Assembly: GCA_964035545.1 (NCBI GenBank)
Contig: OZ037773.1
Span: 2,261,751 to 2,325,750 of the forward strand
Length of the DNA: 64,000 nucleotides
DNA from: Bugula neritina
Lineage: Eukaryota; Animalia; Bryozoa
Reading direction: 5' to 3'
The notes beneath the pieces were generated by a model that saw nothing but the letters and a program-made list of their open reading frames with translations, made no database searches and was not told where the DNA came from. The translations under genes and the position numbers were made by a program. The stretch's first letter is position 1. The number at the start of each line of letters is the position of its first letter. Positions 33,830 to 60,080 of the stretch are shown here, in pieces.

Positions 33830-34765
33830 ATGGAGAATAGCAGCGTTCTGTGCGGTGACATCACTGACTTTTGTGTAGACTCTACTAGATCCGCAGTGTT
33901 TTTATCTTTTAACAGTTTTAGTGTTATATTCAACATCATCAATTTGGTTTTCCTGAAGAAGTTAGACAAATCCAAAAGAAACGCATCATTTTGGATAATA
34001 GTGAACATCGGTATCTGTGACGTCGTGACTTGCTCCTCCTTTTTTCTGGCAGTCAGCTGTGAATTGAACAGACAAATCATAACTTTACCAGCGGTTGGTG
34101 CCCGAACCTTTCAAGTTATAGTGATTACATTTGGCTTCGTCTCAATTGTTGCTAGAAATTTTGTATTGGCGACTGGCAGCTATGAGCGACACGTCTCCAT
34201 CTGTCAGCCTTATCAAGTGAACTCTAACAAAGTAGTTAGCAATATGAAACTCTTCTTGGCCATTGTTTGGATATTTACCTTTGCTCTTATGACTATCACT
34301 ATTACCACTGATACCACTGAGTATTGCTTTGGTGAGTTTGGAGCTATCCCAAATGACTCCAATCCACAGACTAGTGTTGCGTTTGTTGGATCCATTACAA
34401 CAGCTTTTGTAATCTCTGTCATCTGCTTATCTAAGGCTTGGAGAGAGTTGAAGAGAATGCAGTCCAGAAGTACAGTTCCAGGACAAGATGATCTGATAGT
34501 GAAGAGATCTGCCCAGTATATTATAATAATCTTCATCACTCTTTACTTGTCCTACATTCCAACAGCCATATCCTTAGTTTGTAATAACCTTAATGATATT
34601 TTAAAAGGCTTAGGATATTTGGCCAGATGGATTTCTTTCTATTACATTACAATTTTTAGCATTCTTAATGTTGTAATATATTTCATCATGACCCCAGGCT
34701 ACCGTATTCATGTGATGAATTTACTCATGTTGAAGACTCCAACAGTCCGTCAAATTGAATCTTAG
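33830..34765 (+). CDS. Intronless rhodopsin-class (family A) 7TM GPCR, orphan/chemoreceptor-like, 311 aa
   Basis: Seven hydrophobic segments, with TM1 N, TM2 NIGICD, YERHVSICQP (DRY equivalent), TM4 W, TM6 SYIP and TM7 LNVVIY. Confidence 0.88.
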   Translation: MENSSVLCGDITDFCVDSTRSAVFLSFNSFSVIFNIINLVFLKKLDKSKRNASFWIIVNIGICDVVTCSSFFLAVSCELNRQIITLPAVGARTFQVIVITFGFVSIVARNFVLATGSYERHVSICQPYQVNSNKVVSNMKLFLAIVWIFTFALMTITITTDTTEYCFGEFGAIPNDSNPQTSVAFVGSITTAFVISVICLSKAWRELKRMQSRSTVPGQDDLIVKRSAQYIIIIFITLYLSYIPTAISLVCNNLNDILKGLGYLARWISFYYITIFSILNVVIYFIMTPGYRIHVMNLLMLKTPTVRQIES

Positions 34766-36664
34766 ATCATTACTATATAACAAGTTGTTGTAGTAGTTTT
34801 GTTAAACAATGTTCATGCTTGCTACAAATTGTAACCATTATTGTTTGATGTTGCTATGACAACATGATAAATAATATATTTTGTTATGATATTTAAAAAA
34901 CCTGCCATGAAAAAGATATGTTGTGTAGAGTAATGCTTTGAATAAATGTTAAATGTATTCTGTATTCCTATTAAATTGTGAACAAAATTTGCAAAGGAAA
35001 GAAGTGTAGGAGTTAGCGGAACAGGAAGTTAGTGGTCTGAGTCCTCACACCTGTTATGTTCGAAAGAGTATCCACTCATAATTTCTCCTGCATGTGCAGC
35101 ATGTAAAAAATTTCTTAGCAGGCTTTAAATTAAAACCTTTTCATTAGATGTTTTCACGATGAACACTATAAACTTATATAATTATGAGATTTTCCAGGCT
35201 TCATATATACACTTGCATATATGTATAAATATAATATGGAAGCAATCAGTATAATATTATCAGCTCTGTGTAATGCATAGATAACTTTCCAACCAAAATG
35301 CACTGTTTTCAAAACAAAAAATGAATATGCAATTGATAACTCTATAGTCTATACCAATAATCCCTGTGCGTGTGTAGCCCCTATACGCCTCATAAAGAGG
35401 ATAACTTGTAAAAAGGTTGATAACGATCTTTAAACTACCAATCTATGCAACTAAGACGCTCTTTAAATATTCAACAGCTACCGCAAGGTTTAAGTTGCAG
35501 ACAAATTGGCAATCAACAATATTTTGGGGAAAATAAAACTACTTGAATAGCAAGTCTCACGAGTATTTTGTAAGATTCAAATAATTATTTATGTTTCATC
35601 TTTATATTATATATACTGGTACTTACTAGCTAATTAGCTAATTTTTTCACTTCATTTTTTATTCAATAAAAGCCAAGTTTATTTTGTATCAAACAGATTA
35701 TATAACGGCTTCCATGTGGGTTCAAGCCATTATGATCACTTTGTTCTCACCTAGACCATGTAGTTAAGTGAATGGTTAGTTTGAAACACCATGCCGATTA
35801 GTTGTTACTCACTAGCTTGGTACATCATACTTCACTATATATACTAATAGTAAGCAGCAGCTTTGGAACTCAAATTCTTTGAGTTGAATAGTAGATATGG
35901 TGAGATTCATAACTAAAGCTGCACAGAAAAGCTAACTGTATTAGGAGTTCTACAATTAATATAATATTTGTGCGCATACTACATAATTTAATTTTTGTTA
36001 GGAGAAGGCTGATGCTATAGCTTTCAACTGGTCCACTACTCCAGTCTAGCCAAGGTTCATCGTGGTAATCCTGAATAAATAAATTTGTTTAAGCTTTGAA
36101 TTTTCTAGAGTCTAGACAAGCATTATCTACAGATTATTGGTGTAAGTTATGAAGCCTATCATATCTACTATTCAACTCACTTTTATAATAACTCTATTTT
36201 TGCAATGGTGTGACTGCAGGTAAAATTTGAACATACTTGCAATGAGCTCCAAAGCTGCTGCATTATTTTATAACATATTTTAATGAACCATTTGGCAGAT
36301 TTCAATAATAGTGGTAAAATTTGAACAGTAGCTATGAGTTGCTAAGGTGCCACCCATTCGTGTTCATTATAGACAACAGCAACTGAACAAATTGCACCAG
36401 GAGTCTGCTTCAACATAACTATTTTGATTTGTGAAGTCTGGGATGGACAATTCCTGGAATGCAGGTTAAGCATGATAGAAAATTGTACTTTTTATTCAGT
36501 TGTTTATGTATACACTATACTTTACATAGTTTATATACATTTTAAATAGAACATGTTGATGAGTGAGTGCATTGCAAACTTTATAGAGCCCAATATATAT
36601 TTAGAAGGTTTATCAATAATTTATTATTCAAAGGTTTGAACAACTCTACAAGTAAACATTTAAA

Positions 36665-36687
36665 GTGGCCCTGAAAAGGCCCGTTGG
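36665..36687 (-). terminator. Replication-dependent histone mRNA 3' stem-loop (one stem mismatch)
   Basis: Minus strand CCAAC-GGGCCT-TTTC-AGGGCC-AC, preceded by the same 3' UTR that follows the H2B stop in the array copies (TAATCTC..CAGCTCCACTAACCCC). Confidence 0.85.
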
Positions 36688-36689
36688 GG

Positions 36690-38060
36690 TTAGTAGTGGA
36701 GCTTGGAGAGATTACTAAAAGGTTGTCATAGACTAGAATGCAAGATTTCTTTGTCCACATATCGACTGAGAAGTAGTTGCAGCAAAGTATTTTGTCTTTG
36801 CTTTACCTGTATAAAAAAATATTATACGTTAACAAATGGAACTGTTGTTAACATGGGTATTTTAATTAATTGTAGTAGCTACAGATTAGAAATAAGCTTA
36901 TTTTGCAATCAAGAAACAAAATTATCTTTCATAATTGTTGCCTACCTCATGAGTTGCTCGACTTTGTAACTGTGAAGCCAGTTGGGTTAATATTTTGTCA
37001 CTAAGGGTAAACCTTTCGCCACACTCCATAGCTGCAGTCTTCAATGCCCTTAGAAGTATCTTGTCCTCGGCTCTAAAAGTATACCATCCCCATATTGCAT
37101 GATTTATATTCTTCAACTTCAACAATGCATGTAAATGTAAAGTGCCACTGAAAGTACTGTGATAAAACTGTGGGTTTGAATGTAGCTAGTTGCTTTGCAT
37201 GCTATAGTTATGAAGAACAGGTCGAGAAATTGAGTATAAATTACGGTAGCTTTATTGTGTAGAATAATATAGTAGGTCTGCATCCAGCGAGCTCCAGTAG
37301 TAGACTGAACTACACTGGAACTCGCTGGCTTTTATATACAAGCAGAACAAAGACATTCCTTTGTTGCAGAAATGCCAACGTTTCAAATTTCAACAGAGTA
37401 AAATATCTTAGCTCTCTTCCAAAGCTCTTTTCTAGTGGCCTATAGGTTCATTTTAAGTTAGAAAGTAAGCTTCTGCACTAATATGCAATTTCAACGATTT
37501 TCAGCTTGACTATTAAAAGGGGTACTTTTTTCAGCAAAGGTATAAACAAAACTTCAGTACAGGGCGTCAACTTTATAACATTAAGTTTATACAATAGAGA
37601 AATTACCTTGTCCACGGTGCTATGACTGGTTGGCTTAGGAGAGGTAAAGGTGGTGTGAGCTCCTTGGGGTCTGTACGGAGAGTAATGACCTCTGTAAATA
37701 GCGTCAAAAAGTAAAGATTATGCACAGTTTACAAGTTGAAAAGAGAAATTTAGCAGCATATAGGCTGAAGAAGTGCAATCTGAAACTTGCATTTACAGGA
37801 GTACAGCCGGTCACACATTACACTTGATTGGCCAATTTTATAGAGTTGAGTATGAGCCAACATGATACACTCTACTTAAACAAACATTGGCTTGGGTATA
37901 TTACAATATGGAAAACAATATTCTACACTCAAAACTTACCATTACTGAGAGATGAATGACAGTCTTTAGTGTCATCATCACCTTCCTCATTCAGCAGACT
38001 CGGAGGGGGGTCCAAGTGATGGTAATAGGCAGGTCTCAGACCCTTGCGAGGCCCAGCACG
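36690..38060 (-). pseudogene. Intron-containing fragments of an unidentified host gene (weakly caspase p10-like) lying between the H2B 5' end and the H2B 3' UTR
   Basis: Exon-like blocks with splice sites: ending 37940, 37691-37607, about 37125-36946, and starting 36806. Homologous pieces recur in the array. Confidence 0.45.
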
Positions 38061-38129
38061 TCCAGACATTCGAGCTGCTGTAGCCTTTCCTGCTTTCTTG
38101 GCACCTTTGGAGCTAACTTTAAGAGGCAT
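38060..38129 (-). pseudogene. H2B: Histone H2B N-terminal fragment (first 23 codons or so)
   Basis: MPLKVSSKGAKKAGKATAARMSG matches invertebrate H2B tails. Similarity stops before the histone fold. Confidence 0.8.
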
Positions 38130-38224
38130 GCTGTTCAGTTAGTGATAATGTTGAATGCTTGTTCTCGATGTAGTGACTGCAACAGTAGTTTGATGCTAAA
38201 TGATGTCCAGATCTTAGGGCACTC

Positions 38225-38345
38225 TGTATTTATATGTATCAACAGTAGTTAGAAATTATCCAATCAGATAGCAGTTGTGTAAGCTGCCGCCTTAGTGTGC
38301 CCTAATGTTTACATTGAAAACAATTATTTGTCATAGACCAATGAA
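38225..38345 (-). promoter_or_regulatory. Histone-type promoter
   Basis: TATAAA at 38234-38229, about 100 bp above the H2B ATG. CCAAT boxes at 38260-38264 and 38338-38342. Confidence 0.6.
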
Positions 38346-41300
38346 ACTCCTAGAACACTCTAATTTGCATATCTTATACGATATAGCCACGTCAAACTGT
38401 TGGGGAAATAGGTAGGCAACTTCGAGTTGAATTCCAATAAGTTACTCTAAAGTCTAAACTTTGAAATAATATTTTTCTTTTCAACCATTATATTGACATA
38501 ATGTAGATTTTGACTCAAGTTTGTATATAACATCATTTACAATACTTCTAAAAATATTCTGAAAGTATTACATCACACAAACAATTGCATACTTACAGTA
38601 TAATATGCTTTCATTCTAAAATGCAGCATACACTCTCAGTATATGATGTAGCATATGCTCTCAGTCTATAATGCAGCATACACTCTCAGTCTATTATATA
38701 GCATAATATGCTCTCAGTGTATCATCACGGGCTTTCCATGGATCCGTCTCAGCTAGATCGATCTGAAAAATGTGCTCAGATCAATCAATTTTCCATGACG
38801 ATGTAAGATCAATCTTGCGTAGTTGTCTCAAATGTATGGGTGTTGGTTTTGTATGACTTACTAAAAATAAACTAAAATATAAAACTTCATACTTGGTCTT
38901 TTAGATTAAAAATGTATATTATAATTGCACATTTCATTCCTTTGTCGTAGACAGTTTAGTATCTGATTTGTTACAATGTCTGCGCTTTAAAAAAAATCTT
39001 TGAAAATTACAAAAGCTTCATAGGGCATCACCTCAAAAAAAGAAAACCTTGCCTAGATCTGCTAATGGTGATTTAATTGGTGCACTTTGTGATTGTGCTT
39101 GCAATATAATTAGAGGAAATGTTCCTTTGACTTCAAAGCAGTTCAATAATCTTAGGATGCATCATTAAGTAATTAAAAGCTCTCACTAATAAGTCGAGTG
39201 TCAAAAATAAGCAAAAAATCATTCAAAAAGGTGGACTTATTGGATTGCTGTTGAAGCCTCTAGCTAAGATCTTGATGGGTGGACTTTTAAGTTGACATCA
39301 TAAAAAAGTATTACTTAATTGATCCATCAAAATATGAAATGCTTAAATCAGCTGCTAGTGCTGGAAATGAAAAGCGACAAAATAATTTTGACATATCTAC
39401 GCATCCAAATATTAAAAATGTAAAAGATATAGATCAAAAAATGGAAGAAACAGTAAATAAATCAGATTTGACAGTTTCTGAAAAGGTTGAAAAATACAAT
39501 GCACTACTAGAGAAATATATCAGAAACTTTAGGAATGCTCTTGAAACCTCAAAACCTATTCCCGTCACTTGGATCCCCCGCTGAGTCAGCTGAATGAGGA
39601 AGGTAATGATGACACTAAAGACTGTCATTCATCTCTTAATAATGGTGAGTTCTGAGTGTATAAGAAAATTGTTTTCTGTATTGTAATATACCCAAGCCAA
39701 TGTTTGTTTAAGTAGAGTGTATCATGTTGGCTCAACTCAAACTCAACTCTATAAAATTGGCCGATGAAGTGTAATGTGTGACCAGAATTCAATTATCAAT
39801 AAACAGGTGTACTCCTGTAAATGCAAGTTTCAGATTGCACTTCTTCAACCTATGCTGCTAAATTTCTCTTTTCAACTTGTAAATTCTGCATAATCTTTAC
39901 TTGCTGACGTTATTTACAGAGGTTATTACTCTTCGTACAGACCCCAAGGAGCTCCCACCACCTTTACCTTAATTTCCAAGTCAACCAGTCATAGCACCGT
40001 GGACAAGGTAATTCCTCTATTGTATTCCTCTAAATAACAAATCTAGGGTGCATGGAACAAGTAGGGGAATTATGAGGCGCAACAACAAAGTCATGACTTA
40101 TAATCAAACTAGGGCTGGTCTTAGTTTTTTTCTATGCTAAGTGAAAAATACATAGTTACTACTTTTCCACTTGATATGTAGATATCGTGCTGTTATCCCA
40201 AATATTGTGTATATATTTTGATGTATAACAATGACTCGTATATTATTATTTTTTTTATTTTTAAATATTTTTTTACTCTTACAATTATGGTGTTTTTACA
40301 AATGTATGGGTGTTGGTTTTGTATGACTTACTAAAAATAAACTAAAATATAAAACTTCATACTTGGTCTTTTAGATTAAAAATGTATATTATAATTGCAC
40401 ACTTCATTCCTTTGTCATAGACAGTTTAGTATCCGATTTGTTACAATGTCCGCGCTTTAAAAAAAATCTTTAAAAATTACAAAAGCTTCATAGGGCATCA
40501 CCTCAAAAAAAGAAAACCTTGCCTAGATCTGCTAATGGTGATTTAATTGGTGCACTTTGTGATTGTGCTTGCAAAATATTTAGAGGAAATGTTCCTTTGA
40601 CTTCAAAGCAGTTCAATAATCTTAGGAAGCATCATTAAGTAATTAAAAGCTCTCACTAATAAGTCGAGTGTCAAAAATAAACAAAAAATCATTCAAAAAG
40701 GTGGATTTATTGGATTGCTGTTGAAGCCTCTTGCTAAGATCTTGATGGGTGGACTTTTAAGTTGACATCATAAAAAAGTATTACTTAATTGATCCATCAA
40801 AATATGAAATGCCTACATCAGCTGCTAGTGCTGGAAATGAAAAGCGACAAAATAATTCTGACATGTCTGCGCATCCAAATATTAAAAATGTAAAAGATAT
40901 ATATCGAAAAATGGAAGAAACACTAAATAAATCAGATTTGACAGATTTTGAAAAGGTTGAAAAATACAATGCACTACTAGAGAGATATATCAGAGACTTT
41001 AGGAATGCTATTGAAACCTCGAAACCTAAAACAATCCTTGGTGAACCTGCTTTAAAAACTATAGATTTAAATAGTACCACAGAAAACAAAAGCAATAATC
41101 AGTTTCAATCTTTTGGAGAATCACTTGACAGTATTCCTATATCATACCGTCAAAAAGCTCGTAAATTGGTGAGTTTCTTGAAAAAAAAACAACTCATTTT
41201 CTGTTAATCAAGACAATGAACTGCTTTAAAAAAAATCACGTATTAAGAGGTTCAAATGTTAATCAATTAATCAATGATGCAGTACGAAACAAAAAACCAA

Positions 41301-42470: not shown

Positions 42471-42716
42471 GTTATGCACCAGCACAAAGAAATATCTCAT
42501 AAAGCCATGAAGATCATGAATGAAAAGCATCCAGCCTAACACACTACAACAGGCTATCCACCATAACAAGCCGAGAGATACAGACTGCTGTGAAGCTAGT
42601 TTTGCCGAAAGATTTGGCTAAACACGCTGTGTAGGAGGGCGCACAAAGGTTGTAACTAAATACACCATCCCCAAGTAATCTCACCCAGCTCCACTAACCC
42701 CGCTGGGCCTTTTCAG
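42470..42716 (+). pseudogene. H2B: Histone H2B C-terminal half plus 3' UTR and half stem-loop
   Basis: Translates to H..K.IS.KAMKIMN / [37 protein letters not shown] / TKVVTKYT.PK*, followed by GGGCCTTTTCAG. Confidence 0.88.
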
Positions 42717-42844: not shown

Positions 42845-44990
42845 GCATGATAAAATTCAATTTGTAATTACAAGAAGCAACGAAATGAAGTGTATCAGAA
42901 TTAAACATTTAAAATTTTTTGACATCATAAATTTTATAGCTCCATGGTTTTCACGTGCAAATTTTATCAAAGCATACAATTGTAGTATGAAGAAAAGCTT
43001 TTTCCCATATGAATATGTCATATCATTAGAAAAGCTCAATGAAAATTCTCTGCCTGCACATGAAGCTTTCTACAGTAGTCTAACTCAATCAAATATCACA
43101 GCAGCAGACTATCAGAATTGTAACCAGGTTTGGCAAAACAAAAACATGCTCACAATGAAAGATTGTTTGATTTGTTACAACAATCTTGATGTATTACCAT
43201 TTTTAGAGGCAGTTGAAAAACAACGCATGGTTTATCGTGAAAAAGGCATTGATATGTTCAAGGATGAAATTAGTGTTCCATCTTTAGCTACTAAATGATT
43301 ATTTCATGAACCAAATACTAAAAACCTTTTTATTCCATTGATTGGCAGAAAAGATGCAGACTTGTATAAAACTATACGGAATAATATTATTGGGGGTCCA
43401 AGTATTGTTTTCCACAGCTATCATGATGCTGACAAAACTTCCATTTGTAACAATTCATTTGATAGTAAGTCAAAAGTTTGTAAAAATGTGTTTGGATTTG
43501 ATGCCAATGCTTTGTATTTGTATTGTGCTACGCAAGAACTTCCAACAGGTTTAACTATTAGAAGAGGTAAAGAAAATACCTTTCCTCCAAAGTTTTGTGA
43601 CTATTTTGGGAGACCGAGTGTTGAATTGCTGGAGTACTGCTCCTACTTGAATGGTGTATTTATTCAACATAAATATAACAAGGGTGAACAAAAAGTTAGG
43701 CAGCACAGGCTCCCAGTAGATGGTTATTGCAAGAAATTGAAAACAGTTTTTCAGTTACATGGTTGTCTATTTCATGGACATAAGTGTGTAAAAACAAAAG
43801 AGGTAGTATTTAATCCCATCAATGGAAAATCAATGACATCATTGTACCAAGACACTAAAATAAAAGAATCCTATATCCGTGCATTAGGTTATAGACTTGA
43901 GGTGATATATGAATGCCAATGGGAAAGTTATAAAAAGTTTTCAAAACCTTGTAAAAATTTTTTAGCTTTGTTTCTCTCTAGAGAAATGGAGGAAAATAAA
44001 CCAATGACTGAAAAAGATATCCTTAATGCAGTTGAAAACAATTTATTTTATGGTTTTGTAGAATGTGAATTATATGTTCCTGACAGTGTGAAATCTAAGT
44101 TTTCTGAAATGACACGAATTTTTAAATATGCAAGTTTAAGCAGATCTGACTTGTCAGAGGATATGCTAAAATATGCTGTACACTATGACATGTTGAAACA
44201 GGCTCAAGACACTTATTGGTAGTTACTATGGCAAAAAGATGTTGGTACTTACTCCGCTTCTTAGGTGGTATTTATCACATGGACTATGTGTTTCTAATAT
44301 TTATCAGGTTGTTCAATTTAAACAGCATAAATGCTTTGTGGAATTTGGAGAGTCTGTATGTCAAATGAGACAAAATGCTGACAAAGACTCTTCCATGAAA
44401 ATTCTTGCTGAAACTTCGAAGTTTTACGGTAATGTAATATATGGTGCAACTATAACAAATAAAGAGCGTATTACTGATGTAAAATTTGTTTCTAATTTAA
44501 ATGCTGCTGAAAAGCTTGTGAGTAGTAAACATTTTATGTCTATAGAAGAGCTTGATGATAAAGTTTTAAAGCTGTGGGCAAGATACTTGTAAGGGCATTG
44601 AAGAGTGCTGCTATAGAGTGTGGTGAAAGTTTCACAATGGGTGACAAAACATTAATCCAACTGGCTAATTCACAGTTACAAGGTCAAGAAAGCAATTATT
44701 GCTCTGAATTCAAAAACCTATTTTTGTTTTGGAGATGAGGGTAATAAACTTAGAACAAAAGGAATAATGAAACGATGTAATGACATAAAAAAGAATTTTT
44801 AAATGTGCTAAATAACAAATCTAGGGTGCATGGAACAATAGGGAAATTATGAGGCGCAACAACAAAGTCATGACTTATAATCAAACTAGGGCTGGTCCTA
44901 ATTTTTTCTATGCTAAGCGAAAAGTACATAGTTACATGGTTACATAGTTACATAGTACATGGAGTTACTACTTTTCCACTCAATATGTAG
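42845..44990 (+). pseudogene. Protein-primed family B DNA polymerase (Polinton pPolB), disrupted; partial copies at 40030-40180, 53670-54260, 55600-56195, 59650-60075
   Basis: FFDIINFIAP, K.FFPYEY, IIGGPSIVF, FDANALY, an inserted nuclease-like segment (LPVDGY..QLHGCLFHGH..YECQW), KFYGNVIYG and C-terminal TYNQTRAG..FFYAKRKV..GVTTFPL. The YxDTDS region is absent. Confidence 0.88.
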
Positions 44991-47267: not shown

Positions 47268-47496
47268 GTTATGCACCCGCACAAAGATATATCTCTTAAA
47301 GCCATGAAGATCATGAATGAAAGGCATCCAGCCTAACACACTACAACAGGCTATCCACAATAACAAGCCGAGAGATACAGACTGCTGTGAAGCTCATTTT
47401 GCCGCAAGATTTGGCTAAACACGCTGTGTAGGAGGGCACAAAGGTTGTAACTAAATACACCAGCCCCAAGTAATCTTACCCAGCTCCACTAACCCC
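47268..47496 (+). pseudogene. H2B: Histone H2B C-terminal half, copy 2
   Basis: [38 protein letters not shown]. Confidence 0.88.
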
Positions 47497-49688
47497 ATTG
47501 ATGAAAATGATTGAGGATGGAGTAATTGTTAAAATTGATAAACCTACTCCATGGGTGGCACACCTATGGTAGTAGTTCCTAAACTTGGCCAAAACAAGGT
47601 GAGAATTTGCACAGATTCTACCGAGGTAAACAAGCATATTTTGAGAGAGTTCCATCTCATGGCAACAGTAGATAGCAGCTTAGCTCAATTAGGACAAAGA
47701 CAAATTTTTTCTAAGATCGATGCAAACAGTGGATTTTGGCAAATTCCTTTAAGCAAAGAATCTAGCAAACTAACAACATTTCTGACTCATTCTGGACGAT
47801 ATCGCTATTTGCGACTGCCTCAAGGCCCATGCAGTGCTCCAGAGATTTTTGTTGCTGAAATGAACAATATTTTGAAGGATGTTGATGGTGTGGTTATACA
47901 TATAGATGACATACTGGTTTTTGGTGAGAGCAAGGAGCAACATGACACAAGATTGCAAATAGTGTTAGAAAAACTTGAAGCTTCAAGCATTACGCTCAAT
48001 AAAGACAAATGTAAATTTGGAGTGGCATCTGTTAATTTTCTTGGTTATGTCATAGATCAGTCTGGTAACTTCAGTACGAAGTTTTCTTGGAATGGCCAAC
48101 CAGCATGCTAAGTTTTCCGAGGAATTAGCTGCTGTGAGTGAACCAATTAGAATGCTGTTGAAGAAAGATGTTCCATGGCACTGGTCCAGCAAACAAGAAA
48201 ACTCCTTCAAGACGATAAAAGAAATATTTCAAAATGCACCATTTTTAGCAGTCTATGATGTAGACAAAGACACCATAATCACAACAGATGCTAGCAATGC
48301 AGGTCTAGGAGCAACACTCTGTCAAAATCAACAGGATGTCTCTCGGCGCTTGAAATCTCCTGCAAGTCGATCTTTAACAGTGACCGAAAAGCGTTATGCA
48401 GCCATAGAAAAAGAAAGTTTAGCAGTCTGTTGGGCTATGGGAAAGTTTTCTCCACATATACTAGGTATGACGAATGTGGTTATTGAAACTGATCACCGTC
48501 CACTAGTTACTTTGTTTGGGAATATCTTTCTAGACAGGCTTCCACCAAGAATTCAAGGGTTTAAACTTAGACTTCAAAGATTTCAGTATACTATCAGACA
48601 TGTGAGGGGGTCTAAGAATGTTGCAACTGATGCTCTCTCCAGGTATAACACTGCTGAAGTAAACGAGATTGATGCAGCAAGAGAAATGGAAATTGAACTT
48701 TGTATTGATAACATCTATCAACATGGATCTAATAGTAGGTTGGAGCAGCTTCGTTTAGAACAGCATGAAGATGAAATACTGTCCAAAGTAATCAAATTAG
48801 TAGAGAATGGATGGCCAGGGTATTTGTCCACTGAAGATGTCCTTCTGAAGCCCTATTTTGAAAGAAGATCCATTTAACAATAAACAAAGGATTCTTGACA
48901 CTTGGCAATCGTTTGATAATACCGTTAGCTCAAAGAGAACACGTGTTGCAAGATTTACATAGAGGACACTTGGGCATTACAAAATGTCAAACACAGGCTA
49001 GAGATAGCGTGTGGTGGCCTTCTATGTCAAAGGCTATTGAGGCTATGATCAGCAATTGTGCTGAATGCAAAATCCATGCAGCTAAAATTACAGAGCCATT
49101 ACGTCCTTCTGCAACTCCAGATAAACCTTGGCAACACCTTAGCACTGATTTGTTGTTTTATAACGGCCAAGTATATCTTCTGGTTATTGATATTTATTCA
49201 AGGTAACCTGAACTTGCCTTGCTGGGAAACTCTGACTTTTCTTCAAGTAAAGTAATAACACACCTAAAATCTATTTTTCCACGACATGGCATACCTGAAA
49301 TACTATTGTCAGATAACGGCCATCAATATGCAAGTGCAGAATTTAAACATTTTTCTGTCGAGTATGGATTTACCCATGTGACTAGCAGCCCACATTATCA
49401 CAGAGCGAATGGAGCAGCTGAGCGAGGAGTAAGGACCATCAAAAGCATGCTTGCAAAAGAGAAAGATCCTTATTTGCCTTTGTTAGCCTATAGATCCTCA
49501 CCGCAGTATAGCTCATACTCTCCAACAGAATTGTTAATGGGTAGAAAATTGAGATCCACTGTACCCATCCATCCGGATAAGCTTAAACCTGAACTCCCTG
49601 ACCATGACTTATTCAAAAAGAGCAACAATCAGTATAAAGAGAAAATGGAAGAAAATCATGACAAAAATCCTAAAGTGCGCCCTCTTGG
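47497..49688 (+). mobile_element. Ty3/Gypsy pol fragment (RT, RNase H, integrase), disrupted, no LTRs seen
   Basis: PMVVVPK, KIDANSGFWQIPL, RLPQG..SAPE, HIDDILV, TDASNAGLGA, ETDHRPL, LHRGHLG..C..C, SDNG, AERGV. Confidence 0.93.
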
Positions 49689-50360
49689 GAGGTGAAACTT
49701 CCTAATGCGTATTCTGCAGAACAAATATCAGCCAAGTATGAGTCTATTCCACAGGCAGGTGCTCTTACCGCCTGGCCACATTTGCAAGACTTAGCAAAAA
49801 ACATAGTCAAGGGACAAGACATTTAAGTAGGGCTACTCATTGGAGGCAATTGCCCATTAACCTTCAAACCTAGCGAGGTACTAGTCGGAAACGACGCAGA
49901 CGATGAACCATTTGGCGTACGTACTGGCCTAGGGTGGGTTATCATGGGTAGTCTAGATACAAATAACACACATGATGACAATTCAGGCAACAAAACAACA
50001 ATAGTCAATAAAACCGTAACTCATTCACTCAAGAAAGCTAAAACATCAGTATCTTTCAAATGCCAAACTGAAACATCAAAACAAATAAATAAAATAATTA
50101 ATTTATTGGCTCAAGATTTCAAGGAATGTGTAACAGACAAAGAAGCGGCTTCTGTAGAAGACAGAGCATTTTTGTCTCATGAAACAAAAAACAAAGATCG
50201 TTGATGATCATGTCACCATGCCTTTACCTTACAAACACAAACCACCGCTAGATAACAGTTTTAAAACAGCAAAAAACCATTTCAACTCACTGCTGAGAAA
50301 GTTCTCTAAGAACCAAGACTTGGAAAACCAGTACAAAGAGTTTATGGAAGACTAAAAACC
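49689..50360 (+). mobile_element. BEL/Pao retrotransposon fragment (region between protease and RT), copy 1
   Basis: WPHLQDL, VGLLIG.NCP, EPFGVRTGLGWVIMG, SVEDRAFL, MPLPYK. Confidence 0.8.
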
Positions 50361-52906: not shown

Positions 52907-53152
52907 GTTATGCACCCGCACAAAGAAATATCTGTTAAAGCCATGAAGATCATGAATGAAAAGCATCCAGCCTAACACACTACAACAGGCTATCCACCAT
53001 AACAAGCCAAGAGATACAGACTGCTGTGAAGCTAGTTTTGCCAAAAGATTTGGCTAAACACGCTGTGTAGGAGGGCGCACAAAGGTTGTAACTAAATACA
53101 CCATCCCTAAGTAATCTTACCCAGCTCCACTAACCCCGCTGGGCCTTTTCAG
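52907..53152 (+). pseudogene. H2B: Histone H2B C-terminal half, copy 3
   Basis: Same sequence and the same lesions as 42470-42716. Confidence 0.85.
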
Positions 53153-58293: not shown

Positions 58294-60080
58294 CCATGTT
58301 GACAACAGTTACATTTGTTAACGTATAGTATTTTTTTATGCAGATAAAGCAAAGACAAAATACTTTGCTGCAACTAATTTTTAGTGCATATTTGGAAGAA
58401 GAAGTCACCAGTGCTTGAAAATAATGGGACCTACTGACTTGGGTAAAAATAATATATATTTTAGTAATACTACCATGCATGTATATAACATAAAGACAGG
58501 GATGGAGTTACTACTTTTCCACTCGATATGTAGATATCTTGCTGTTATCCCAAATATAGTGTATATATTTTGATGTATAACAATGAATCATATATTATTA
58601 TTTTTTATTTTTAAATATTTTTTGCTCTTACAATTATGGTGTTTTTACAAATGTATGGGTGTTGGTTTTGTATAACTTACTAAAAATAAACTAAAATATA
58701 AAACTTCATACCTGGTCTTATAGGTTAAAAATGCATGTTATAATTGCACACTTCTTTCCTTTGTCATAGACAGTTTAGTATCCAATTTTTCACAATGTCT
58801 CTGCGCTTTAAAAGAAATCTTTCAAACTTACAAAAGCTTTATAGGGCATCACCTCAAAAAAAGAAAACCTTGCCTAGATCTGCTAATGGTGATTTAATTG
58901 GTGCACTTTGTGATTGTGCTTGCAATATAATTAGAGGAAATGTTCCTTTGACTTCAAAGCAGTTCAATAATTTTAGGATGCATTATAAAGAAATAAAAAC
59001 TCTCACTAATAAGTCGAGTGTCAAAAATAAACAAAAAATCATTCAAAAAGGTGGATGTATTGGATTGCTGTTGAAACCTCTTGCTAAGATCTTGATGGGT
59101 AGACTTTTAAGTTGACATCATAAAAAACTATTACTTAATTGATCCATCAAAATATGAAATGCTTAAACCAGCTGCTAGTGCTGGAAATGAAAAGCGACAA
59201 AATAATTCTGATATGTCTGCGCATCCAAATATTAAAAATGTAAAAGATATAGATCAAAAAATGGAAGAAACACTAAATAAATCAGATTTGACAGACTTTG
59301 AAAAGGTTGAAAAATACAATGCACTACTAGAGAAATATATCGGAAACTTTGGGAATGCTCTTGAAACCTCAAAACCTGAAACAATCCTTTGTGAAGCTGC
59401 TTCAAAAACTATAGATTTAAATAATACCACAGAAAACAAAAGCAATAATCAGTTTCAATCTTTTGAAGAATCACTTGACAGTATTCCTATATCATACCGT
59501 TAAAAAGCTCGTAAATTGGTGGATTTCTTGAAAAACAACAACTCATTTTCTGTTAAACAAGATAACGAACTGCTTTACAAAAATCAAGTATTAAGAGGTT
59601 CAAATGTTAATCAATTAATTAATGATGCAGTACGAAACAAAAAAATAGAAATAGAAAAGCTTGATGATGAATTTTTAAAGCTGTGGGCAAGATGCTTGCA
59701 AGGGCATTGAAGAGTGCTGCTATAGAGTGTGGCGAAAGTTTCACTCTGAGTGACAATACATTAATCCAACTGGCTAATTCACAGTTACAAGGTCGAGAAA
59801 GCAATTATTGCTCTGAATTCAAAAACCTATTTTTGTTTTGGAGATGAGGGTAACAAACTTAGTACAAAAAGAATAATGAAACGATGTAATGACATAAAAA
59901 AGAATTTTTAAATGTGCTAAATAACAAATCTAGAATGCATGGAACAAATAGGGGAATTATGAGGCGCAACAACAAAGTCATGACTTATAATCAAACTAGG
60001 GCTGGTCCTAATTTTTTCTATGCTAAGCAAAAAGTAACTAGTAATGGAGTTACTACTTTCCCACTCGATATGTAGATATT

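Follow-up and report, generated by a model that had tools for sequence, protein, structure and literature searches.

New genes are known to arise as chimeras through genomic rearrangement, and Sdic of Drosophila is reportedly one that was joined at the level of DNA and then amplified in tandem. Here we describe a locus of the bryozoan Bugula neritina in which a histone H2B-variant gene has become the shell around the tail of a gene of the GON4L/YARP/Mute family. It lies on the minus strand of a stretch of 64,000 nucleotides (hereafter the window), contig C9:2261751-2325750 (C9 being OZ037773.1) of an assembly of 216 Mb with ~33% G+C and nine large contigs. The chimeric nature of the locus is confirmed, and its sequence and that of its relatives lead us to regard it, with a probability of about 0.6, as a functional, lineage-specific protein-coding chimera, of which there are five tandemly dispersed copies. 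As in fusions of the Sdic type, two parents have been joined by genomic rearrangement with the introns of one of them kept, one parent supplied the promoter and N-terminus and the other the body, a small array was formed later, and sequence constraint is relaxed. Unlike in those fusions, the recipient is a histone gene, whose shell carries a histone promoter and a stem-loop with a histone downstream element (HDE), the donor is a regulator of histone genes, and the chimera is known here from genomic sequence alone.

Human GON4L/YARP and FLASH carry C-terminal SANT/Myb domains that bind the C-terminus of NPAT, and these proteins are found in histone locus bodies; the PAH repeats of human GON4L bind CRAMP1, and Mute of Drosophila is a repressor of histone genes (PMC7432317, PMC12979687). 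The chimera resembles these proteins in that 137 C-terminal residues descend from GON4L, in the place of its SANT/Myb domain, but neither the YY1-binding region nor the two PAH repeats are present in it, and it has 160 residues compared to about 2,000. With replication-dependent H2B and H2B-variant genes it shares the octamer, CCAAT and TATA elements, the 5′ untranslated region (UTR), 23 codons, the 3′ UTR, the position of the stem-loop and the core of the HDE. However, it has no histone fold, its coding region is interrupted by three introns, its stem-loop is mismatched and its HDE is more distant from the stem by 3–5 nt.

An H2B-variant shell around the end of GON4L

By alignment, the 5′ part of the locus has ~94% identity with five H2B genes of 124 residues on C9, from upstream of the promoter through codon 23 (coordinates of all features in Table 1). 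This similarity breaks off exactly after ATGTCTGGA, resumes at the H2B stop codon and runs into the 3′ flank, and the part lost from the shell is exactly the histone-fold codons 24–124. Since the two blocks of homology flank exactly these missing codons, both pieces of the shell come from one H2B-variant gene. The original prediction, a reading of this DNA from its letters, had named as a refuting case a chance juxtaposition of 5′ and 3′ pieces from different paralogues, and this is contradicted by the single H2B-variant loci that match both window 38537-38061 and 36716-36350 (the matches being longer for the sister copies of the chimera). The 5′ shells of the chimeras and those of the five variant genes form sister groups. 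The shells have diverged by 6–10% from the variant genes and the insert by 17–26% from its donor, a gap of about two-fold that is most simply explained by promoter constraint, by gene conversion within the array, or by both.

One further locus in the genome, C4:17595072-17596553, is collinear with the insert, starting at the 5′ junction and ending a few bases beyond the stop codon. The two are 75–83% identical, introns included, and have the same exon borders, frame and stop. Such collinear identity, extending over the introns, shows a transfer at the DNA level and not retroposition. The donor gene has two PAH repeats upstream of the captured part; the only other PAH gene of the genome is a Sin3-like gene with three PAH repeats on C3. 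A HMMER search with the donor exon for the second repeat (PAH2) led to the Priapulus “GON-4-like protein” XP_014666206.1, which has two PAH repeats and a C-terminal Myb_DNA-binding_7 domain, and in the reverse search this protein matched, over the whole genome, only the two PAH exons on C4. The two PAH repeats, the Sin3-like gene as the only other one with PAH and the reciprocal match with Priapulus together identify the donor as the GON4L orthologue. The insert thus consists of the four final coding exons, with their introns, of the GON4L/YARP/Mute orthologue of this genome on C4. A DNA rearrangement swapped codons 24–124 of an H2B-variant gene for the 3′ end of GON4L, starting in the middle of an exon and including three introns and some bases past the stop. 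The locus has what marks a chimeric gene of this origin, i.e., two identified parents, an in-frame junction and parental introns that have been kept, and to this extent the proposal of a foreign spliced sequence in a histone shell was correct. At the fusion point the H2B ATGTCTGGA and the donor ATGCCGGA are alike, and because of this resemblance the junction may have formed, or slipped later, at a short similarity.

The junction between H2B and GON4L (38061|38060) is in frame and would read ...ARMSG|RAGPRK... in the product, and exon 1 stops in phase 1 ahead of GTAAGT. Four open blocks in compatible phases (1, 2, 0), with GT/AG borders and pyrimidine tracts, add up to 483 nt or 160 codons and are intact, and the predicted product consists of a 23-residue basic H2B tail followed by 137 C-terminal residues of GON4L. 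There are thus three GT/AG introns in the coding region, compared to the intronless replication-dependent H2B genes. At the 3′ junction (...TTAG|TAATCTC, at ~36715) the former H2B stop TAA (36714-36712) is now part of the 3′ UTR and out of frame. Exon 3 has 69% amino-acid identity to donor exon 3 and is almost invariant in four of the five copies. The domain and homology searches of the chimera used single exons, one by one. A Pfam scan of each exon translation found no Histone domain (PF00125), which scores 49.5 bits in a neighbouring H2B-variant protein, and no PAH repeat, the PAH exons of the donor sitting upstream of the breakpoint.

Most of this anatomy had been anticipated. The H2B promoter, the ATG, the ~23 tail codons, the in-frame switch, the 3′ UTR and the stem-loop are all at or near the positions first given for them, the GT donor after 37940 and the open exon 37691-37607 were found, and two more exons (37072-36946 and 36806-36726) can be added. 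The last exon had been said to miss the stop codon of H2B, and it does, but its own TGA (36728-36726) completes the frame. The doubt that had been cast for that reason on a functional protein is countered by this stop, by the intact frame of 160 codons and the splice sites kept in all five copies, and by a fusion in the sister species.

The H2B-variant genes belong to a divergent family whose members have 124 residues, are 70% identical to the canonical H2B of this genome and lie at C9:2199504-2426922 (loci L006-L010 and L018-L020). No fewer than four of them are intact, at least two are broken, and one of the neighbours of the chimera is a pseudogene. They have a perfect histone stem-loop and HDE, with AATAAA downstream. 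The array (C9:2.19–2.43 Mb) has no H2A, H3 or H4 genes, and within the window the H2B-variants are present only as decayed H2B-fold fragments (42524-42649, 47318-47470 and 52960-53085, plus strand).

Copies in the array and the fusion in the sister species

The original prediction had advised a search for further copies, and four full-length ones were found on C9 (L002-L005), 93–96% identical. All five keep the exon lengths (190/85/127/81 nt), the eight splice dinucleotides, both split codons and the open frame, and the exon-by-exon comparison of this copy and its four sisters revealed no stop, frameshift or lost splice site. The nine indels among the copies are all intronic, the exons having none (P = 0.027).

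The same fusion is found in the sister species, from which SRR4020078 and JGI 3300002729 derive and in which a Logan contig (L022, SRR4020078) has the promoter and the H2B tail joined to the same GON4L sequence. This partial copy, which is genomic, extends through intron 1 and exon 2, whose splice sites are present, and lacks 9 nt (CGTGCTGGG) at the fusion point (window 38060-38052); this deletion and an insertion of 3 nt compared to the donor are the only coding indels, both of them in frame. Two metagenome scans for more chimera loci of the sister species found none. A word search with the H2B-variant tail for an annotated or transcript-derived product of 160 residues gave no candidates, and one with the open frame of exon 3 returned only the GON4L exon of the sister species.

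The GON4L locus of the sister species, on two JGI contigs (L024 and L025) and one Logan contig (L023, of the same run series as L022) with 79–90% identity, was used to polarise changes for a branch analysis. The ratio of non-synonymous to synonymous substitution rates (omega) was 0.08 and 0.28 on the GON4L branches. Synonymous differences per site (pS) were 0.139 on the stem of the chimera vs. 0.117 and 0.128 on the two species branches. The slightly higher value of the stem places the capture at about, or before, the species split, and the chimera, which had been called nascent, cannot be described in this way with a synonymous divergence of its stem of ~0.14 from GON4L. Between species, the ratio of non-synonymous to synonymous differences per site (pN/pS) in those codons of exons 1 and 2 that derive from GON4L was ~0.31 (P = 0.0006–0.07, depending on the copy). 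In a neutral simulation a stop-free stem had a probability of 0.14–0.22, and five stop-free copies one of 0.01–0.045. Taken together we favour, short of proof, that the reading frame has been maintained under relaxed selection, as the comparison of these sequences suggests.

The captured C-terminal region

The donor protein ends with WTR followed by 42 and 25 residues, its tryptophan being 70 residues from the C-terminus. In the Priapulus GON4L, the Pfam Myb_DNA-binding_7 domain begins with the tryptophan W665, at 67 residues from the end of the protein. The donor and the Priapulus protein correspond, on comparison by eye, in the motifs WTRx[ED]D and [IV]xxR[FL]xxLLxLL, and the tail of the chimera has WTRxED...IxxRLxxLLxLL. 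The same alignment by eye puts ~7 extra residues, compared to Priapulus, in the region of the putative helix II. Position and motif only, not a statistically significant match, lead us to infer strongly that the captured part corresponds to the SANT domain.

Signals at the 3′ end

The stem-loop was said to be retained, and it is present at 36682-36667, but with a G·G mismatch. It scores 19.2 bits with the Rfam model Histone3 (RF00032), whose gathering score is 34; the intact H2B genes score 32.7–38.4, an H2B-variant gene 37.7 and L005, with a perfect stem, 30.7. In the canonical structure the stem-loop has an energy of -6.2 kcal/mol with the G·G mismatch and of -3.5 in L002, compared to -9.9 in every H2B or H2B-variant gene. 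Position 3 of the stem is G in four of the five chimeras, this copy included, the perfect stem-loop of L005 being the one kept, and the stem-loop of the chimera thus appears to be drifting. Every H2B or H2B-variant gene examined, pseudogenes included, has GGCCCTTTTCAGGGCC followed after 13–15 nt by AAGAGTTGTTC or a close variant. The HDE begins 18 nt past the stem in the mismatched chimeras, this copy included (13 in L004), vs. 13–15 nt in intact genes, and its core AGAGTTGTTC is kept in all copies. The change GAAGAG to GTAGAG in the HDE was considered as decay specific to the chimera and rejected, as an outlying H2B-variant gene (C9:2199k) has the same change. A genome scan for the U7 snRNA (RF00066), the pairing partner of the HDE, gave no match, a result that is not conclusive.

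Introns put into histone genes shift their 3′ ends toward polyadenylation. An AATAAA is found 41 nt past the stem of the chimera and also in H2B-variant genes, and is absent downstream of the canonical H2B gene examined. Given the presence of introns and a damaged stem-loop in four of the five copies, the mRNA would probably end mostly by polyadenylation at this signal, rather than by SLBP/U7 cleavage.

A functional gene or a by-product of the array

If the gene is functional, its H2B-type promoter would drive transcription and splicing would take place at the introns inherited from GON4L. The product would be a small nuclear protein, with its C-terminal part corresponding to where vertebrate GON4L and FLASH carry the SANT/Myb domain that binds NPAT and targets histone locus bodies. 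By analogy, its role would most likely be that of a mini-GON4L without PAH repeats, binding a partner of GON4L at histone genes or competing for it.

A number of results weigh against this. Regarding the C-terminal region, Pfam gave no SANT/Myb match with any exon translation, and in a scan of the whole genome with PF21227 neither the donor nor the chimera was matched, the only hit being at C1:20830901. Donor exon 3 had no match in a phmmer search against PDB, BLASTP and hhalign of the exon pieces against the Priapulus GON4L did not match the SANT region significantly, and an ungapped BLOSUM scan against that region, with 2,000 shuffles, gave nothing significant. Regarding selection, the stem of the chimera has 13 synonymous and 25 non-synonymous changes (omega ~0.58), a value not significantly below 1 (P = 0.085) and significantly relaxed relative to GON4L (Fisher P = 0.021). 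Among the copies, the pooled pN/pS is 0.73 (P = 0.23), and the non-synonymous divergence (dN) is about that of the introns (K 0.02–0.04). Finally, the histone 3′ signals are decaying in the chimeras, and the region is rich in transposable elements, rearranged and littered with dead fragments of the chimera.

The genome's single Myb_DNA-binding_7 match (C1:20830901-20830987, L014:4901-4987) is a terminal exon ending in ...AVSHRYRNLVKY*, possibly the C-terminus of the FLASH/CASP8AP2 orthologue.

These selection and sequence-decay results are also what would be expected if the locus were a non-functional by-product, i.e., a chimeric unprocessed pseudogene made by illegitimate recombination in a transposon-rich, duplication-prone array of H2B-variants, and copied passively afterwards, with frames that would have stayed open just because few copies exist and these are young. 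The loss of the stem-loop in four of the five copies, the altered spacer to the HDE, the broken fragments nearby and the pseudogene among the neighbouring H2B-variant genes would all fit this explanation. However, the insert is about as old as the species split, and in all this time neither the five copies nor the partial copy of the sister species have acquired a stop, a frameshift or a lost splice site. The coding indels are all multiples of 3, and non-synonymous changes are in deficit between species. The joint neutral expectation is roughly 1e-3, a rough product of the indel, simulation and frame results and not a formal test. We consider a by-product unlikely for these reasons, although it survives best among the rivals, and a functional gene is judged likelier than a passive family of pseudogenes.

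Within the functional interpretation, a more specific proposal by analogy is that the hybrid is a feedback regulator of the histone locus, in which a mini-protein made from an H2B promoter, combining the basic H2B tail with the NPAT-binding tail of GON4L, would tune histone output in this lineage. It would enter histone locus bodies and rival full-length GON4L/Mute (a repressor) and FLASH (a 3′-processing factor) for NPAT. The idea has its appeal, but we hold it to be speculative and rather improbable.

The weakest explanation, offered by the original prediction as a non-polyadenylated regulatory RNA and here taken as a histone-timed transcript cleaved at the stem-loop that would act as RNA, e.g., by titrating SLBP or U7, is in keeping with the histone promoter kept at ~94% identity, with the HDE core AGAGTTGTTC in all copies and with the perfect stem-loop of L005, but it is highly improbable, as the element on which it would depend carries a mutation in four of the five copies including this one, an AATAAA follows, change between species is quicker at synonymous than at non-synonymous sites, and the preserved frame, the splice sites and the in-frame indels are left unexplained.

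Genomic setting

Spliced genes and retroelements are present in the window, and canonical histone quartets are located elsewhere on C9 and on C5. An intronless open reading frame (ORF) of 311 codons (33830-34765, plus strand), ~2 kb away from where the chimera ends on its 3′ side, resembles a multi-pass membrane receptor similar to G protein-coupled receptors; an exact look-up of this ORF gave no record. From ~38840 to 60800 (plus strand), inspection of ORFs revealed a large element in several repeats whose ORFs recur with frameshifts and comprise a short MLKSAASAGNEKRQ... ORF as well as polymerase-like and integrase-like ones. The same inspection located a block at 47551-49695 that resembles the reverse transcriptase, RNase H and integrase of a long terminal repeat retroelement. 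The dispersed repeat inside intron 2 (query positions 1078-1296) was found by genome search at no fewer than 25 sites on other contigs, with 80–94% identity.

The inverted fragment at 39555-40025 is 86% identical to query positions 422-862. The exon-3-like fragments are older, with 51–61% protein identity to exon 3 of the chimera, and occupy the same position in the repeated element. They were considered as processed (intron-less) copies, and this was rejected, since the intron-2 acceptor is attached to them, which makes them genomic fragments. A palindromic hairpin (L002:548-628) matched several models of miRNA precursors (mir-2024, mir-4782) on both strands, well under their gathering scores, and is probably an inverted repeat similar to a miniature inverted-repeat transposable element. 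The snoRNA-like Rfam matches of the region are weak and far under threshold.

Table 1. Features of the chimeric locus and its fragments, in window coordinates unless a contig is given.
Feature	Position	Strand	Remarks
5′ block from H2B-variant	38061..38537	-	promoter, 5′ UTR, H2B tail codons 1-23; ~94% identical to L006-L010
Octamer ATGCAAAT	38370-38363	-	promoter element
Inverted CCAAT boxes	38342-38338 and 38264-38260	-	promoter elements
TATA TATAAATA	38234-38227	-	promoter element
Start ATG	38129	-	23 H2B tail codons, to 38061
Exon 1, 190 nt	37940..38129	-	codons 1-23 H2B, codons 24-63 GON4L
Intron 1	37692..37939	-	from GON4L; 74% identity with donor intron; GT/AG in all copies
Exon 2, 85 nt	37607..37691	-	its end ...PVIAPWT is the start of the putative SANT-like region
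Intron 2	37073..37606	-	only its ends match the donor intron
Dispersed repeat in intron 2, ~215 bp	37155-37373		missing from the donor intron
Exon 3, 127 nt	36946..37072	-	putative helices I-II of the C-terminal three-helix region
Intron 3	36807..36945	-	from GON4L; 81% identity with donor intron
Exon 4, 81 nt	36726..36806	-	closed by the donor's own stop TGA 36728-36726
3′ block from H2B-variant	36350..36716	-	3′ UTR, stem-loop, downstream flank; by alignment to H2B-variant genes
Histone stem-loop GGGCCTTTTCAGGGCC	36667..36682	-	G·G mismatch, third pair
HDE-like element TAGAGTTGTTC	36638..36648	-	core AGAGTTGTTC common to canonical H2B genes
AATAAA, candidate poly(A) signal	36620..36625	-	41 nt past stem
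Broken inverted partial copy	39555..40025	+	partial exon 1, then intron 1 and exon 2, the latter with in-frame TAA; inside repeated element
Exon-3-like fragments	44577-44696, 59689-59805	+	also C9:2395645, 2446985, 2448505, 2453812, 2454263

Implications

The route by which this locus arose is a known one, but a histone gene is an unusual chassis to receive a foreign body, and the protein from which the piece was captured is itself one that acts at histone genes. The five copies provide a natural series on the fate of histone 3′ signals after the entry of introns, with one perfect stem-loop and four mismatched ones. If the locus is not expressed, it would be a well-dated fusion, dead on arrival, in a duplication-prone array. 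Should the product be made and bind the NPAT orthologue, it would represent a separation-of-function fragment of GON4L that arose naturally, a SANT tail without PAH repeats, and would be relevant to the assembly and regulation of histone locus bodies beyond flies and vertebrates.

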